Under the pieces are notes generated by a model, which did not search any database, had not been told where the DNA came from, and was given only the letters and a program-made list of their open reading frames with translations. A stretch of 19,341 bases of DNA. Source: Piromyces finnis finn (taxonomy: Eukaryota; Fungi; Neocallimastigomycota). The position numbers were made by a program, and so were the translations under genes. How positions within the stretch are numbered: position 1 is the first letter of the stretch; each line of letters starts with the position of its first letter. The stretch spans positions 1 to 19,341 of the forward strand of contig MCFH01000188.1 in the NCBI GenBank assembly GCA_002104945.1, read 5' to 3'. Shown piece after piece: positions 1,218-16,068 of this stretch.

Positions 1218-2813
1218 TGTAAAAGGTGTTTTTATAATATAGTTAATAAGTTATTAATATTTAGCTAATTAAGTTAGTTATTACCTCTCTATACGAGTTA
1301 ATAACTAAATAAAGTTTTATAAAAATAATAAAAGAAATAAAATAAATATTTAAACACTAAAGTAATTACAAAAAAAAACGTATAAAGATTTTATGAAATA
1401 ATGTTTACTTAAATAATTCTATATTAATTATATCTTTTATTTTTATTATAATAAATTACATTATTATTATTATAGTTACTAATTTACTTTAATACTAACG
1501 CTAAAGTATTTTACTTAGTTTCAACTATACTATTTAACTATATTAGTTTATTTTCTTTACCACTTGATTGGGTAAAGTAAATAAACTTCCTATTTAATTA
1601 ATAACCATTAATATATGGTTATACATATATCTGGCGCAATAAATGGTGACCAGAATATATGGTTTGTAAAAGTTTTACTAAACTTATAATTTAATATTAA
1701 AATATTAAATTAAATAAAAGGTTAAAAGATAACTAGGTTAGAAAAAAAAAATGTTTTATTAAAATAATCTTAATTGATTTATAAATGAATAATTAATTAA
1801 TATATTATGGTTAAAATAATTTCTTTTATTTTATTTAATGATATATTGCTAAAATATATAATAATAAGATTATTTAGTAGTAATACTCATTAAGTATTAA
1901 TTATTATTAATAGTTAATAATTTATAGTTAATAATTTAATAATTTATGGTTAATAATTTTTGGTTAATAATCTTTACAAAGATTTTAATTTCATAACTAT
2001 TCTAAACTATTTATACTATTTGTAATTTTACATTTAATAATAAAATAACTTTTCAATACATGATTATATTCATAATATATTTATAATACTTAAACTAAAC
2101 TTAAGACTTATTCCTAATTATTAAAAATAACTATTGTTTATAATATTCATAATATTAATTATTTCTTAATTATAATATAATTCATTGAATATAATATTAA
2201 TATATAATCCTCTAGTTCAAAGATTATAAATTATGTTATTGAATAATTATTATAAAATAAAGTTAATTAGTTCCGGAAAATAATTTTAATTTAATTAAAC
2301 ATAATTTTTTATACTTTGAGTGAATGATTTATGTTTGATATATCAGGGGTGATCATTCTCTGAATAAACAATTAATCATTGCTAACAAAATATCTTTAAA
2401 TTGGAATATCTCGTGAACCAGCAGAGATATTGACCTGATTTTAAGATATGTTGTTTGTCTCGAGCGTGGCTTTCTAACGAATAATTATATAACCAAAACA
2501 TTTTTATTCAAAAATCGTCATTCGTTGAGGAGATACGCGTGTTTTTCTTATTCCATTTTAACGATAAGGGTTAAAGTTATTTATTTATAAAAATTATTAA
2601 GGGTTAAGGTCATATTTTAACCTTTCTAAATTTTTAAATATTTCTTAATAAAATTTTATAATTTATTTGAAAATAAAATATTGTTGATTTTGAATTTTCA
2701 TAAGTGATTTCACAATTCCAAGTGATCTTGAAATTGTAATTTCACTAGTATTCGTGACATGGTTTCAATTGAAATATTTGTGGGCAAACTTATGGCCACA
2801 AATATTTCTTACA
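1218..2813 (-). repeat. 3' LTR of element A (about 496 bp once solo LTR C and one TSD copy are removed)
   Basis: 1218-1664 joined to 2765-2813 aligns colinearly with 15008-15500. Termini TGTAA...TTACA. Confidence 0.93.
1665..2759. mobile_element. Element C: solo LTR (1095 bp) of a third family inserted in the 3' LTR of A
   Basis: Begins TGTAAAAG, ends GTGACA (TGT...ACA). Flanked by a perfect 5-bp TSD TGGTT (1660-1664 and 2760-2764). The uninterrupted site AATATATGGTTTCAATTG is present in the other A LTR (15441-15458). No coding capacity. Confidence 0.85.
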
Positions 2814-2822
2814 ATGCCCCCT
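2814..2822 (-). promoter_or_regulatory. Polypurine tract of element A
   Basis: Minus strand AGGGGGCAT immediately before the 3' LTR start TGTAAG and just after the integrase stop. Confidence 0.75.
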
Positions 2823-7737: not shown

Positions 7738-7742
7738 CAAAG

Positions 7743-8346
7743 TGTAATGCTGACACAGAAAGAATAGATTAGGATATCTATTCTATTACAATAACACAAA
7801 ATTTAAAATAAAATAAAAAATTGTTTTATTAAAAATATCTTTTATTATAATAGAAATTTTATTAATAACAATTACATCGATAAAATGATGAAAAATATCT
7901 TCTATTTATATTTTTCCTAAATACATTTATATTATATTATAACTATTTATTTCTTATATATTATTATTTAAAATCTACACTAAAATCTTAATTATTAATA
8001 AATATTTAAACTATAACTATTTTTAGTAAAATACAATTGGCAATTCAAATTAAGTACTATTCAATTTGAATATGTGCCCATGTATTATTGATATATTAAT
8101 CATTTATTATTTATTTATTTCTATGAAAAAACAATACTAAAACTAGGGATTTAAATTGAGAATATTAATTTACTTGTTAAACATTAAAAATAAATTAATA
8201 ATTTATTTTGTTTTAAACTTTAATTATTAATAAATAAATTATGTCTCATTTTCTTTTTCTGAATATAATTTGTGTAACTTAAACAATAATACTTGTGGCT
8301 TAAGTTACATTAAAGATATCAAACAGAGGCGTTTGATATCTTTACA
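7743..8346 (-). repeat. 3' LTR of element B
   Basis: TGTAATGC...CTTTACA, matches 13513-14116 base for base. Confidence 0.97.
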
Positions 8347-8358
8347 ATCTCTCTCTCT
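8347..8358 (-). promoter_or_regulatory. Polypurine tract of element B
   Basis: Minus strand AGAGAGAGAGAT abutting the 3' LTR start TGTAAAG. Confidence 0.85.
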
Positions 8359-8382: not shown

Positions 8383-11300
8383 TTATAAGGAATCTTTTCT
8401 CGAAGGAATTTCAATTACAAATGGTTGGTATCTGTGCTTGATTAGATTACCAACTTTATTCTTTCTAATTTTCATGGAGGAGTCGTTCGACTTATATTTT
8501 GACTTTTTAGAGTTTCTTTCAAACTCTTGTATTAATTGTTTATCTGGAATCTGATCTTCAGAAATCCAAGTGGATTTGTCAAATCCTTTCCATGATAACT
8601 TATAAAATGTTTCACCATTAACAGATTTCATCTTTTCAATTTTCTCTGGAATTTTTTCAATTAAATCTGTGTTAAGGTGAATGTTCCTCTTCCTACGATT
8701 AGACCTGTCGTTAAACTTGTTTTCAAAGTATGGTTCTAACAATGAAACATGAAAGACTGGATGACATCTCATTGTCTTTGGAAGTTTCAATTTGAAAGCG
8801 AGAGAACTAACTTTTCCAATTATCTCAAATGGGCCAAGCATTTGAGGTGCTAATTTTCTCTTTAGGTTAGTTCCAGGAGAATCTTTCAATAACCATACTT
8901 TCTTTCCCACTTCGAACTCCGGGGGAATCATTCTCTTCATATCGGCATATTTCTTATATGTTTCTTTTGCTTTTTCTAAGTTTTCTTTTAATAATTTAAA
9001 GTTTTCATTCATATCAATTACTCTTTGTTCAGCTCTACTAGGTCTATCATTAGCCGGGATTTCCAAGCTGAACTTTGGATGAAAACCATAATTAGCAAAG
9101 AATGGGGATTGATTTATAGATTGTTGTAAAGTATTATTATATGCAAATTCAGCAAATGGGATAAGATCAACCCAGTTATTCTGCTTTTTATTTATAAAAC
9201 AACGGAAATATTGTTCTAATATGCCGTTCACCCTCTCCGTTTGACCATCTGTCTGCGGATGGTTGGCAGTTGATAATGAATGATTGATATTAAGAAGGTC
9301 ACAAAGTCTTGACCAAAAGTCAGAAGTAAATTGCGAGCCTCTATCAGAAATGATGGAATCAGGAAGACCATGCAAACGGAAGACATTAGCAATAAAAGCA
9401 TCAGCAGCAATCGAAGCAGTAGGAAGACAACGTAAAGGAATGGCGTGAGCAAATTTAGTAAATCTATCGACAACAACCATGAGAGTTGTCATATCTCTGG
9501 ACTTAGGAAGATCAACAATAAAATCAATAGAAATATCAGACCAGGGCCTACTGGGAGTGTCCAAAGGGGATAACAATCCATAAGGCTTATGTCTGGGGAC
9601 TTTGGATTTGCAACAAGTCACGCAAGATTTGATAAAAGATTTAACGTCTGAATGAAACCTTGGCCACCAAAAGTTTCTGGAAATCAGTTCAGTGGTTTTC
9701 TTAATACCGAAATGACCAGCAGCAACAGAATCATGATGAAGTTCCAAAACTCTTGTCCTAAGAGATTTAGGAACATAAATAAGATTATTATATAACAAAA
9801 ATCCTTCGTTATCAATAATAACTTTATCAATATTTTTAATAGGTGCATTACATGCAGAACCATTCATTTTAAATTGGACAATAGAATTATACAAATCGTC
9901 ATTTTTAAGTTCTAATAAAATAGAATCGATTAACGGTTTGTTATCGCTATGATGAAACGAAATAGTAAGACAAGAAACATCAGAATTAATATTATTCTCT
10001 AAATGGTCACTTCTACGAGACAGGATATCAGGCTTACCGGATTTCTTTCCAGCTCTATAAATGAGTTTAAAATCAAATCTGGATAAGAACAAATTCCATC
10101 TAATTTGTCTCTGAGATAACATTTCAGGTTTTCTAGGAAATGTTAAATTCTTGTGATCAGTATAAATTATGAACGGATGGCGTGCACCTTCTAAATAATG
10201 ACGCCATTCTTCAAGAGCAACTACAATAGCTAAAAGTTCCTTGTCATATATAGGATAGTTTCTTTGACAACTCGTCAAACTTTTAGAAAGAAATGCAATA
10301 GGATGTAATTTGCCATCAAATTCTTGAGAGAGAATAGCACCGACAGCATAATTACTAGCATCAGTTTCTACAATAAATTGTTTATTACTATCCGCATGTT
10401 TTAGAATAGGAGCTGACGTGAACAGAGATTTTAATAAAATAAAAGCGTCCTGATCTTCTTTCACCCAGTTAAAAGCAACATTCTTTCTAGTGAGTTTGTG
10501 AAGAGGGTTTGCAATTTTAGCAAAGTCTTTAATAAAAATTCTGTAATAGTTGCATAAACCAATAAAAGACTGAACCTCTTTAACATTCTTGGGAACCGGC
10601 CAATCGAGAATTGCTTTAATTTTATTCTCATCCATTTGCAATCCATCCTTTGAAATGACATAACCAAGAAAAGTGGTTTTCTCAACATCAAACTCACATA
10701 TTTCTAATTTAACATAAAGATTATTTTCAAGTAGTTTCTTAAGTACCTTTTTAACATGCTCATGATGTTCTTCGATATTATTAGAATAAATAAGAATATC
10801 ATCAATATATGAGATAACAAAATCGTCTAAATAGTCACTAAGGACATCGTTAATGAAGTGTTGAAAAGTTGCAGGTGCATTCTTTAATCCAAAAGGCATA
10901 ACCAGATATTCAAAATGACCATACCTAGTACGAAAAGCCGTTTTGTATTCGTCACCTTCTTTAATACGAACAAGATTATAAGCGGATTTAAGGTCTAATT
11001 TGGTAAAAATCTTAGCATTTTTCACCCTATCCAAAAGGTCACTTATTAAAGGTAAAGGATATGAATTACGAATTGTAATATTATTCAACCTTCTATAATC
11101 AATACAAAGTCTTAAGGAACCGTCCTTCTTTTTAACAAACAAAATTGGGGCACCAGCAGGAGACGATGATTTCCTAATAAAACCTTTATTTAAATTTTCA
11201 TCTATATACTTTTTAAGTTCCTCTCTTTCAACTTCAGTTAATGGATACAAGGGTCCATAAAATAAAGTTGAATCATCCTTAAGTTTGATTTCACAATCAT

Positions 11301-12930
11301 AAGGTCTATGAGGAGGTAACACTTCACAATTTTTTTCGTTAAACACTTCACTAAATTCTAAATATTGGGTTGGTACGGCGACCAATTTATCTTTATTAAT
11401 ATTCTTTTCATTATTATTATTACTACATGATTCATTATCATTATTACATGTTTCATTAATTTTCGTTACAATACATTTAACTTTTTTATTAAAACTAATA
11501 TATTCATCATCGCTGTCATCTTCATCATTAATGGTTCTAACAAGGCGGCCTTTAACATATTCTTTTTCTTCATGGTTTGGGACGGAGGAATCTACTTTCG
11601 GTTTTTTGGTTAAGCTTCGGTCGAGAACATCATGATCTAATTGATCATTCTTGGACTTCTTTCTTGGTTTTCTTTTTCTTTTACCTGTGTTACAGTGTCT
11701 GGCACAATAACCAGAACTAAAAGCGATTTTCTTAGAGTCATAGAAAGCATTTGGATTATGCTTCTTTATCCACGGCAAACCAAGAATAACATCAACACCG
11801 GGGACTTGTAATCCATAAAGTTGAATTACTTCGAAGTGATTTTTGCAACGGAGCATGCACTTCTCAGTCCTTTCCCAAACACTAACAACTCCATCACTAA
11901 CACCTGAAACACGGAATGGTTCCACTTTTTCCAAATTAATACCAAGTTCTTCAGCAAGACTTGGATTAATGAAATTTAATTCAGAACCGGAATCAATTAA
12001 AACCTTAATCTTAACTTCCGAAACTTCATTGGTACTCAAGTAAAAGTCCACAAGGTTTAAATCACTTTTCACTCCCTTGACTCCAACTTTGTAAATTTTT
12101 GGATTAACAATTTTTGGAGTCCTTTCTTTCACAATTCTTAACACTTTTCTGGGCTTTACTCTATTAGGACAATTAAATTTTAAATGTCCTGGTTGTTTAC
12201 AAAGAAAACATAACCCCTTTTTCTTTTCTTCTTCAAAGTTGTCTATGTTTTCATTGTAATTTTTACTTGATCCTTGGATATTCACATACCTTTTGCGTTT
12301 ATTTTCTCTACTAATTCTAAATACATCCACATCCATAGGATCGTTAGCCCTTCTACCATTAAAATAAAATTCACTTAGAGAATTCCTTTTCATCATATCT
12401 TCAACTAAAATAGTTGAAGAAATCAATTGTTCAATTGAAGTTGGGTTTGATTCAATGAAAGCCAACTTCTCCCTAAGTGGTGGTAATAAACCTTTCAGAA
12501 ACATGTAGATTTTTGCGCTGTCATTAAAGCTTGAATTTTGGCTAATACGTTGAAACTCGGTAATGTAATCTAATACCTGACCAAGTTTCCTTTGGCGAAG
12601 ATTATCTAATTTACCGTTAGCTACAACGGTATCGTATCTATAACTGCCAAAATTAGCCTTCAACCTATCTACAAATTCATCATAATGGTTTAAAACCCCA
12701 CTATTATTCTTCATCAACACTGAAGCCCATTCCAAAGGTTTACCAGAGAAGTATGATATAACGAAGTCGACCTTGACTCGATCTGTATTATACAGTGTCG
12801 GTCGAGTACGAAATACCAACTCAACTCTGGTTAAAAATCCATCCAATTCTCTTTGTTTACCAGAAAATATCGGTGGAGCATTAATAATGTTCCCCGAATT
12901 CCCAGAAACACCCACAGTCCTATCACCCAT
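8383..12930 (-). CDS. Element B Gag-Pol polyprotein (gag, CCHC, protease, RT, RNase H, integrase, chromodomain), ~1515 aa from the first ATG
   Basis: CFLCKQPGHLKFNC (CX2CX4HX4C), VLIDSGSELNFI, SYIDDILIYS, TDASNYAVG, YTDHKNL, HHDSVAAGHFG...CVTCC, IDFIVDLP/SDRGSQF/HPQTDGQTER, LGPFEII...HPVFHVSLLEPY, FYKLSWKGF..STW (chromodomain). The ORF-track start at 12972 is TTG; the first ATG is at 12930. Confidence 0.96.
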   Translation of the reverse strand: MGDRTVGVSGNSGNIINAPPIFSGKQRELDGFLTRVELVFRTRPTLYNTDRVKVDFVISYFSGKPLEWASVLMKNNSGVLNHYDEFVDRLKANFGSYRYDTVVANGKLDNLRQRKLGQVLDYITEFQRISQNSSFNDSAKIYMFLKGLLPPLREKLAFIESNPTSIEQLISSTILVEDMMKRNSLSEFYFNGRRANDPMDVDVFRISRENKRKRYVNIQGSSKNYNENIDNFEEEKKKGLCFLCKQPGHLKFNCPNRVKPRKVLRIVKERTPKIVNPKIYKVGVKGVKSDLNLVDFYLSTNEVSEVKIKVLIDSGSELNFINPSLAEELGINLEKVEPFRVSGVSDGVVSVWERTEKCMLRCKNHFEVIQLYGLQVPGVDVILGLPWIKKHNPNAFYDSKKIAFSSGYCARHCNTGKRKRKPRKKSKNDQLDHDVLDRSLTKKPKVDSSVPNHEEKEYVKGRLVRTINDEDDSDDEYISFNKKVKCIVTKINETCNNDNESCSNNNNEKNINKDKLVAVPTQYLEFSEVFNEKNCEVLPPHRPYDCEIKLKDDSTLFYGPLYPLTEVEREELKKYIDENLNKGFIRKSSSPAGAPILFVKKKDGSLRLCIDYRRLNNITIRNSYPLPLISDLLDRVKNAKIFTKLDLKSAYNLVRIKEGDEYKTAFRTRYGHFEYLVMPFGLKNAPATFQHFINDVLSDYLDDFVISYIDDILIYSNNIEEHHEHVKKVLKKLLENNLYVKLEICEFDVEKTTFLGYVISKDGLQMDENKIKAILDWPVPKNVKEVQSFIGLCNYYRIFIKDFAKIANPLHKLTRKNVAFNWVKEDQDAFILLKSLFTSAPILKHADSNKQFIVETDASNYAVGAILSQEFDGKLHPIAFLSKSLTSCQRNYPIYDKELLAIVVALEEWRHYLEGARHPFIIYTDHKNLTFPRKPEMLSQRQIRWNLFLSRFDFKLIYRAGKKSGKPDILSRRSDHLENNINSDVSCLTISFHHSDNKPLIDSILLELKNDDLYNSIVQFKMNGSACNAPIKNIDKVIIDNEGFLLYNNLIYVPKSLRTRVLELHHDSVAAGHFGIKKTTELISRNFWWPRFHSDVKSFIKSCVTCCKSKVPRHKPYGLLSPLDTPSRPWSDISIDFIVDLPKSRDMTTLMVVVDRFTKFAHAIPLRCLPTASIAADAFIANVFRLHGLPDSIISDRGSQFTSDFWSRLCDLLNINHSLSTANHPQTDGQTERVNGILEQYFRCFINKKQNNWVDLIPFAEFAYNNTLQQSINQSPFFANYGFHPKFSLEIPANDRPSRAEQRVIDMNENFKLLKENLEKAKETYKKYADMKRMIPPEFEVGKKVWLLKDSPGTNLKRKLAPQMLGPFEIIGKVSSLAFKLKLPKTMRCHPVFHVSLLEPYFENKFNDRSNRRKRNIHLNTDLIEKIPEKIEKMKSVNGETFYKLSWKGFDKSTWISEDQIPDKQLIQEFERNSKKSKYKSNDSSMKIRKNKVGNLIKHRYQPFVIEIPSRKDSL

Positions 12931-13168: not shown

Positions 13169-13200
<32 letters not shown>
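13031..13200 (-). repeat. Two homopolymer tracts in the element B leader (A20 at 13031-13050 and A30 at 13171-13200 on the sense strand)
   Basis: Runs of 20 and 30 T on the plus strand, seen directly. Confidence 0.9.
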
Positions 13201-13215: not shown

Positions 13216-13463
13216 GGTAGCAACAAAGTTTCTTCAATACTCTCTTGAACCAAGGTAGCAACAAAGTTTCTTCAATACTCTCTTGAACCAAGGTAGCAAC
13301 AAAGTTTCTTCAATACTCTCTTGAACTAAGGTAGCAACAAAGTTTCTTCAATAATCTCTTGAACCAAGGTAGCAACAAAGTTTCTTCAATAATCTCTTGA
13401 ACCAAGGTAGCAACAAAATTTCTTCAATAATCTCTTGAACCAAGGTAGCAACAAAGTTTCTTC
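13216..13463 (-). repeat. 38-bp tandem array (about 6.5 units) in the 5' leader of element B
   Basis: Unit GGTAGCAACAAAGTTTCTTCAATA(C/A)TCTCTTGAACCAA starts at 13216, 13254, 13292, 13330, 13368, 13406, with a partial unit at 13444. No spacers. Confidence 0.95.
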
Positions 13464-13501
13464 GGGCGGTAGATATCCTAACGTACTCTTGAAGTAGTTA
13501 G

Positions 13502-13512
13502 GTAATTGTTAT
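13502..13512 (-). promoter_or_regulatory. Self-priming-type primer-binding site of element B (ATAACAATTAC)
   Basis: Abuts the 5' LTR. Does not begin TGG as tRNA PBSs do. Exactly complementary to the sense-strand sequence at LTR positions 13635-13645. Confidence 0.8.
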
Positions 13513-14116
13513 TGTAATGCTGACACAGAAAGAATAGATTAGGATATCTATTCTATTACAATAACACAAAATTTAAAATAAAATAAAAAATTGTTTTATT
13601 AAAAATATCTTTTATTATAATAGAAATTTTATTAATAACAATTACATCGATAAAATGATGAAAAATATCTTCTATTTATATTTTTCCTAAATACATTTAT
13701 ATTATATTATAACTATTTATTTCTTATATATTATTATTTAAAATCTACACTAAAATCTTAATTATTAATAAATATTTAAACTATAACTATTTTTAGTAAA
13801 ATACAATTGGCAATTCAAATTAAGTACTATTCAATTTGAATATGTGCCCATGTATTATTGATATATTAATCATTTATTATTTATTTATTTCTATGAAAAA
13901 ACAATACTAAAACTAGGGATTTAAATTGAGAATATTAATTTACTTGTTAAACATTAAAAATAAATTAATAATTTATTTTGTTTTAAACTTTAATTATTAA
14001 TAAATAAATTATGTCTCATTTTCTTTTTCTGAATATAATTTGTGTAACTTAAACAATAATACTTGTGGCTTAAGTTACATTAAAGATATCAAACAGAGGC
14101 GTTTGATATCTTTACA
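13513..14116 (-). repeat. 5' LTR of element B
   Basis: Identical to 7743-8346. Confidence 0.97.
13673..13680 (-). promoter_or_regulatory. Candidate TATA box (TATAAATA) of the element B promoter
   Basis: Lies 28-35 nt upstream of the transcript 5' end (13645) predicted independently from self-priming complementarity. The AT-rich background limits specificity. Confidence 0.55.
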
Positions 14117-14705
14117 CAAAGGCACTAGATTGACGGTACAACGTTTCTTGGTTGTTTAGCACTTGCTGGTGGTCTTGTAACCTTTCCTCATGTTCTGCAG
14201 TAAAGGCATTTTCCACAGCATGCAGCTCTTCCAAGCTAACTTGGCTAGCTGACTCATTTGCTTCCAACCTTTGATCCACTTCAACAAATTTTTGCTGAAG
14301 AGCATCGTTTATCTCGCTCTTGTAAACCTCAATACCCCGAAGTTGTTCTTCCATAGCACCCAGACGGTTTCCCATACTAGCAAACTGGCTAGATATTTCC
14401 GAAACCCATCTATTAAGAAGAACTTCAATGTGTTGCATTGGGTTTACCTCACTATTACTAGTAAAAAAGAAAGAAGGATCAACAGGGGCGGGCATAGAAT
14501 CCCCCTGTTGAACCTGTAAATTCTGATTAGATTCGACCTCAGTGCTTTCGAGAAGCACCGGGGTTCGAACCCGTGACATTCCCTCTACACCATCCATGCC
14601 ATCCGCGCTCGCCGCGTCAGGACGGGTCCCGTCCCTTACGAATGATGTTTTTGTGTCCAATTTATGGACACCCCGAGGGTTAGGTGACTTACCTGTGTTT
14701 TTCAT
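14117..14705 (-). pseudogene. Element A gag N-terminal part (disordered then coiled-coil-like), cut by element B
   Basis: ATG at 14705, about 300 bp downstream of the 5' LTR. The frame is open to the TSD and stops only inside the B LTR (GTG TAA). E/Q-rich helical composition continues in the 6004-7737 segment. Confidence 0.8.
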
Positions 14706-14996: not shown

Positions 14997-15007
14997 AGCG
15001 TTAGTAT
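14997..15007 (-). promoter_or_regulatory. Self-priming-type primer-binding site of element A (ATACTAACGCT)
   Basis: Abuts the 5' LTR. Exactly complementary to the sense-strand sequence at LTR positions 15279-15289. Not a TGG-type tRNA PBS. Confidence 0.8.
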
Positions 15008-15500
15008 TGTAAAAGGTTTCTTATAATATTAGTTAATAGGTTATTAATTAGTTAATTAAGTTAGTTATTACCTCTCTATACGAGTTAATAACTAAATAAA
15101 GTTTTATAAAAAATAATAAAAGAAAGAAAATAAATATTATAACACAAGAATAAATACAAGTATATATAAATATTATTATGAAATAAATTTACTTAAATAA
15201 TTAATTTTAATTATATCTTTTATTTATTAATTATAATTATAATACATTAATTATTATTATAGTTACTAATTTACTTTAATACTAACGCTAAAGTATTTAA
15301 CGTTAGTTTTAACTATACTATTTAACTATATTAGTTTATTTTCTTTACCACTTGATTGGGTAAAGTAAATAAACTTCCTATTTAATTAATAACCATTAAT
15401 ATATGGTTATACATATATCTGGCCAATAAATGGTGACCAGAATATATGGTTTCAATTGAAATGTTTGTGGGCAAACTTATGGCCACAAATATTTCTTACA
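15008..15500 (-). repeat. 5' LTR of element A (493 bp)
   Basis: TGTAAAAGG...TTCTTACA, colinear with 1218-1664 plus 2765-2813. Confidence 0.93.
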
Positions 15501-16068
15501 ATTGGTACGTATTATTTAATAATACCATAAATTTAATTATTTATTTTATTTCCAGGAGTCGAACAAAAGGGATTTATACAAAATAATATATTCTAATAAA
15601 AGAATAAAAAAAATGATTATTTGTATATTTATTTATATTATAACTAATAATTATTTTTTAGTGTTATTAATTATTTTGCTTTTACTTTTATTATTTTTAA
15701 CAATTTATACACAAAGTATTTGAATATAAGAAAAAAAAAGGATTAAACATAAAAAAAATCTTATTTGTAACTTTCTCTTTTATTTTATTAATAAAAATAA
15801 TTTTAAGTACATTTATATATTTAATATAAAAAAATATTTTTAGTTAAAACAGATATAAAACTTCTCAATAATTAATTATATTTATCAAAGAACTCCCTTT
15901 TCTTAATAAAAGTGAATTTTTGTTATTTTTATATAAAATTTTTATAATATTTTATTGGTTATTCAATAATAGATTAAATTATTATTTTTCTTAAATAATT
16001 GCTAACCCTTAAAAATAACTATATAAATTTAATATTTTTAACTATATAATTTTATCACGTATCAACAA

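Follow-up and report, generated by a model that had tools for sequence, protein, structure and literature searches.

A probable Tf1-type self-priming module in a chromovirus of the anaerobic fungus Piromyces finnis

The closest described counterparts of the retrotransposon presented here are Tf1 and Tf2 of Schizosaccharomyces pombe, the prototypes of self-priming LTR retrotransposons. [quoted passage not shown] Self-priming is described as a habit that Tf1/sushi chromoviruses share in fungi and vertebrates (PMC6317226, PMC4600332, PMC7175516), and has been inferred from complementarity between 5' LTR and PBS for Tj1 (S. japonicus) and Tcn1 (Cryptococcus, mosses), both of which differ from the present element in host and family (PMC4600332, PMC7175516, PMC6317226).

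The DNA analysed here (the window, 19,341 nt) belongs to Piromyces finnis, whose assembly comprises 56.46 Mb in 232 scaffolds with 21.2% GC (PMC12341934). Judged from its sequence, element B on the minus strand of the window is an intact, recently inserted or recently active Ty3/gypsy LTR retrotransposon (chromovirus), located in the coding region of an older element A (Table 1). Its LTRs are 604 bp long, start with TGTAAAG, finish with TTACA and are 100% identical, without a mismatch in base-by-base extension (14116..13513 and 8346..7743, offset 5770). The 300-bp LTRs returned by a repeat finder are a length-limit artefact, which this direct extension replaces. An earlier note on this DNA had described the element as apparently intact, which agrees with the uninterrupted ORF and its full set of Pfam domains (gag, CCHC, protease, RT, RNase H, integrase, SH3_Tf2-1 and chromodomain). 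Ty3 Gag-Pol is the best solved relative (E = 1e-144). With identical LTRs, an open ORF and more than 100 copies in the genome at 96-100% RT identity, element B is apparently a high-copy, active element; its LTR has more than 70 genomic matches. Subfamilies of element B agree in LTR and PBS and as far as the leader arm of a stem described below, after which their leaders abruptly become unrelated. Tandem repeats, present in the leader of element B, also occur at both ends of the contig of a related element, L061.

Like Tf1/Tf2, element B possesses an 11-nt PBS complementary to its own predicted transcript start, lacks a tRNA-type PBS, and has a single gag-pol ORF with Ty3/gypsy domain order, SH3_Tf2-1 and a C-terminal chromodomain, a likeness in layout and domains. 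Unlike these, it resides in an early-diverging anaerobic fungus, its R-U5 measures 133 nt, and its leader is 582 nt long and contains 38-nt tandem repeats. In a FastTree phylogeny of the RT-RH-IN region (28 sequences, from the window and from its protein relatives; P0036 was left out because its match is too short) element B falls into a clade with gut-fungal elements and Orpinomyces (support 1.00). This clade joins the Batrachochytrium, Ustilago, ascomycete and vertebrate chromoviruses and stands apart from the Viridiplantae clade (0.998). The RT phylogeny against Tf1/sushi chromoviruses proposed earlier is thereby answered in part: the grouping with fungal and vertebrate rather than plant chromoviruses is recovered, in a tree of relatives other than the Ty3, Tf1 and sushi references. 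Gut- or rumen-type metagenomes and Orpinomyces are the sources of the closest protein relatives. Vertebrate sushi-like chromoviruses (V-clade) are 44-47% identical to element B over RT-RH-IN; they form a separate clade in the tree, and their GC-rich LTRs are not alignable with those of element B.

Table 1. Features of elements B and A in the window, and primer/PBS pairs of related elements.
Feature	Position	Strand	Remarks
Element B, 5' LTR	13513..14116	(-)	604 bp, TG...CA; U3 14116..13646, predicted R-U5 13645..13513
Element B, 3' LTR	7743..8346	(-)	second primer-site copy at 7865-7875
Element B, target-site duplication CTTTG	14117..14121 and 7738-7742	(-)	5 bp, on both sides of the element
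Element B, polypurine tract AGAGAGAGAGA	8348..8358	(-)	one base 5' of the 3' LTR
Element B, single gag-pol ORF	8383..12930	(-)	ATG 12930, stop 8385..8383; 1515 aa from first ATG, uninterrupted
Element B, C-terminal chromodomain	~8515-8652		PF00385, E = 7.9e-6, above cut-off
Element B, tandem repeat of 5' leader	13216..13463	(-)	38 nt x 6.5 copies, then A30 tract 13171-13200
Element B, TATA box TATAAATA	13673..13680	(-)	28-35 nt 5' of 13645
Element B, predicted self-primer GUAAUUGUUAU	13635..13645	(-)	start of R; predicted first 11 nt of transcript
Element B, PBS ATAACAATTAC	13512..13502	(-)	directly after LTR-terminal CA
Element B, U5 arm of 20-bp U5-leader stem	13530..13550	(-)	overlapped by local U5 hairpin 13554..13531
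Element B, leader arm of U5-leader stem	13470..13490	(-)	closes 44-nt loop containing PBS
Element B, perfect 12-bp inverted repeat	13550..13539 and 13481..13470		U5 TAGATATCCTAA, leader TTAGGATATCTA
Element B, local U5 hairpin	13554..13546 and 13539..13531		AGAATAGAT and ATCTATTCT, 9 bp
Element A, LTRs	5' 15502..15008; 3' 2815..2759/1665..1218		91% identical
Element A, module	14997..15289	(-)	primer site AGCGTTAGTAT 15289..15279; PBS ATACTAACGCT 15007..14997
L054			78% aa identity to B; primer site, LTR end and PBS as in B
L056			60% aa identity to B; primer site ATAGTTGGAAAAT; LTR end TTTTACA, then PBS ATTTTCCAACTAT
L059/L060			51% aa identity to B; primer site GTAAGGTTAT; LTR end TTTTAACA, then PBS ATAACCTTAC
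L061			57% aa identity to B; primer site GAGTTTTTAT; LTR end TTTACA, then PBS ATAAAAACTC
L062			53% aa identity to B; primer site CAGTCTCGACAA; LTR end GACAGT, then PBS TTGTCGAGACTG
Stickleback element			primer site GTGAGGTATT; PBS AATACCTCAC; LTRs defined independently
Ustilago element			primer site AAGGAAAAGAGAT; PBS ATCTCTTTTCCTT; LTRs defined independently

The PBS of element B is exactly complementary over 11 nt to GTAATTGTTAT inside the LTR (13645..13635), and over 12 bp with the last base of the LTR, A13513, included, as the earlier note had described. This complement begins exactly at the LTR boundary, which is set independently by the 3' LTR and the target duplication, and thereby supports self-priming. 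With the position of the complement fixed at the LTR edge, 0.3% of 20,000 dinucleotide-shuffled B LTRs contain an exact 11-nt complement to the post-LTR bases (P about 0.003). The TATAAATA box, likewise found where it had been described, is one of only three TATAWA motifs in the LTR, and is invariant among B, its sister family B2 and the relative L054. Throughout the genome (56,455,805 bases searched, 232 contigs) a 12-mer containing the PBS occurs 216 times, compared to 56 occurrences of a control word.

Copies of element B within the genome are 93-100% similar, with an invariant primer and PBS and one G.U-compatible change in the leader arm; they are too alike for covariation in primer or PBS to be detectable. 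The compensatory change between PBS and LTR site, for which the earlier note had proposed to search among family copies, is found across families. Sister family B2 (loci L031 and L033) is 87% identical to element B on amino acid level, and its 726-bp LTRs have diverged from those of B. In the alignment of B and B2 LTRs (81% mean column identity) the longest invariant runs are the TATA box, CGATGTAATTGTTATT, which includes the predicted primer, and the LTR end with the PBS (TTACA followed by ATAACAATTACC); the distance from TATA box to primer is equal in both families. Altogether eight distinct self-complementary primer/PBS pairs are present: one in B, B2 and L054, and one each in element A, the four gut-metagenome families L056, L059/L060, L061 and L062, and the stickleback and Ustilago elements; on the metagenome contigs the LTR end was set from the conserved TTTACA terminus together with the match itself, and so with limited independence from it. 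In eight out of ten elements the primer start is preceded by a TATAWA box at -42 to -25 (chance 3-25% per element), which is the sole TATA box of the LTR in L062 and the stickleback element. Such spacing would be expected of a complementary stretch that forms the transcript 5' end. The stickleback element resembles B in its layout, with TATAAAA at -31, then the primer site, then CA-G-AATACCTCAC.

L063, a Batrachochytrium dendrobatidis relative, has no complement of at least 7 nt between its post-LTR bases and its LTR; with LTRs of 314-317 bp that are 94.6% identical (L063:2610-2975), it represents a copy or a lineage without the module. L057 (P0041; 55% identical) possesses a three-part long-range duplex of 10 + 6 + 10 bp located 5' of gag (L057:1013-1183) instead of a clean primer/PBS pair. 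L064 (Berkeleyomyces) displays a nested, complex arrangement.

Element A, 60% identical to element B in RT, possesses an 11-nt pair whose PBS side begins immediately behind the LTR, in the same positions as in B and with a different sequence; its complement is reached in 0.03% of dinucleotide-shuffled LTRs (P = 0.0003). The 3' LTR of element A is interrupted by a very AT-rich insertion of 1.1 kb (1666-2758). The nested arrangement of A with B recurs at 99-100% identity on three other contigs, C131 (5935-9651), C22 and C124, which may reflect haplotigs, a segmental duplication or a duplication made in assembly. In the element A family, copies often lie divergently to a tRNA gene, at 11-12 bp from its 5' end (L037, L041, L049; C184, C62, C15). 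The neighbouring gene is tRNA-Arg(TCT) at L037 and L041, and tRNA-Ser followed by tRNA-Met at L049; a tRNA detectable with ARAGORN is present at 3 of the 19 element A loci scanned. This suggests a Ty3/Tj1-like targeting upstream of pol III genes for the element A family. Tj1 likewise inserts near tRNA genes, whereas element B displays no tRNA-gene association in the data examined.

The perfect 12-bp repeat of U5 and leader, pointed out in the earlier note, forms the core of a longer, covarying stem of 20 bp (13550..13530/13490..13470), which encloses the PBS and dominates the minimum-energy fold. The 186-nt RNA of R-U5 and leader folds with z = -5.6 compared to shuffles. In an alignment of B, three B subfamilies, two B2 copies and L054, all 140 of 140 stem cells are paired, and 9 of the 20 pairs show compensatory double changes; an A-to-G change in the leader arm of the B subfamilies retains a G.U pair. 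The covariation score of the stem is reached by 0 of 500 shuffles, and pairing falls to 39-50% when the partner columns are slid. Full pairing, covariation and both controls show the U5-leader stem to be real and subject to selection. The local U5 hairpin, which had been listed along with the repeat, is present in the sequence of element B; it shows no compensatory change and is disrupted in B2 and L054. Unlike in Tf1, the structure with comparative support in element B is thus the 20-bp stem across the PBS and not a local U5-IR hairpin. In avian and other retroviruses a long-range U5-leader duplex encloses the PBS in a loop, where it is presented to the tRNA. The stem of element B is alike in looping out the PBS, and unlike in that the primer would be the 5' end of the same RNA.

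The best explanation for these features is, with a probability of roughly 0.85, that element B is primed by the 5' end of its own RNA in the manner of Tf1. The self-priming inferred in the earlier note is thus supported, by the complement at the LTR edge, the conserved TATA box, the conserved islands, the eight covarying pairs and the lack of a tRNA-type PBS. RNA polymerase II, guided by the TATA box, would start at or very near G13645; a scan for metagenome contigs beginning at the predicted RNA start found none. The first 11 nt, GUAAUUGUUAU, would fold back over 122 nt onto the complementary PBS just after U5, while the covariation-backed stem would hold the PBS in its 44-nt loop, as retroviruses present theirs to a tRNA. 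By analogy with Tf1, the RNase H domain encoded by the element would cut after nucleotide 11, and RT would then copy R and U5 by extension from the 3' end so released, resulting in strong-stop DNA. The PBS would be copied anew from the primer in every cycle, which would explain why the match is perfect in all copies and all families.

In six of eight families (B, A, B2, L056, L059 and L062), a fold made to contain the primer:PBS duplex lies 0-2.6 kcal/mol above the minimum-energy fold; in L054 and L061 the conformer with the stem is favoured over that with the duplex by 5-8 kcal/mol. Since the stem crosses the duplex, the two should alternate or form a pseudoknot. It is a rather doubtful idea that the crossing reflects such a pseudoknot, or a two-state switch between translation plus packaging and self-priming, or else a PBS loop primed in trans, as by a tRNA, by the 5' end of a co-packaged second RNA. 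If true, a two-state switch or pseudoknot would add a level of control as yet undescribed in Tf1-type elements. The competition of the two structures, along with a transcript start that is predicted, gives some room to an improbable alternative, namely that the complementarity of 5' end and PBS is selected for cyclisation, dimerisation, packaging or translation control, or that a longer transcript contains the site in its interior, while another primer is used; by competing with the duplex, the stem does point to structural roles of the region beyond simple priming. Yet the complementary stretch abuts U5, in precisely the place required of a PBS, and no other candidate PBS can be seen; a transcript 5' end at the site agrees with the TATA spacing, and a like architecture has been tied experimentally to priming or transposition in Tf1 and Tj1 (PMC7175516, PMC4600332).

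Priming by a host tRNA or tRNA fragment, as by half of tRNA-iMet in copia, with an incidental LTR complement, is a still more remote prospect. Half-tRNA priming is known in some LTR elements (PMC6317226), and the PBS complement could pass for an anticodon loop of the Asn type, UUGUUAU. The 40 nt following the B LTR lack TGG, which leaves no site for pairing with a tRNA 3' end, and a tRNA primer leaves unexplained why eight different PBSs each match their own LTR approximately 30-40 nt 3' of a TATA box. As to a half-molecule of tRNA-Asn, the required anticodon-arm 17-mer has no match at 0-1 mismatch, and at two mismatches has 24 matches compared to 67 for the control. No tRNA was detected within the window by ARAGORN, and no tRNA-like match to the PBS was found in the forms tested, with 63 of 2914 Rfam RF00005 candidates scored and a few high-copy tRNAs dominating. 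Among the genomic tRNA hits, 33 are 74 nt long at 69.9 bits and another 23, of 72 nt, are mutually identical; both sets are either tRNA genes of unusually high copy number or repeats derived from tRNAs. Finally, a chance inverted repeat in very AT-rich DNA, a thought prompted by the inverted repeats of 10-13 nt that are common in these AT-rich leaders, has a negligible probability and is in effect refuted already by the comparative data, considering the shuffle values of elements B and A at a position fixed at the LTR edge, the sites that stay invariant within diverged LTRs, and the recurrence of the pattern with different sequences, GC-richer elements included.

The self-priming reading overturns nothing known. 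The earlier note had emphasised a genome far from fission yeast, which is correct for the host, a fungus distant from it; the case is less exotic than implied, since self-priming already counts as the rule in Tf1/sushi chromoviruses. A limited literature search found no prior report of self-priming in Neocallimastigomycota. What is newest is the U5-leader stem, with its strong support and its competition with, or knotting onto, the predicted primer:PBS duplex. Since the host group has few genetic tools, insertion tagging and the testing of self-priming are two uses to which element B could be put. The probable self-priming of element B would extend the Tf1 type to Neocallimastigomycota, on comparative evidence that is unusually clean (eight covarying pairs, nine compensatory stem pairs), and it agrees with self-priming being ancestral in the fungal/vertebrate chromovirus lineage.
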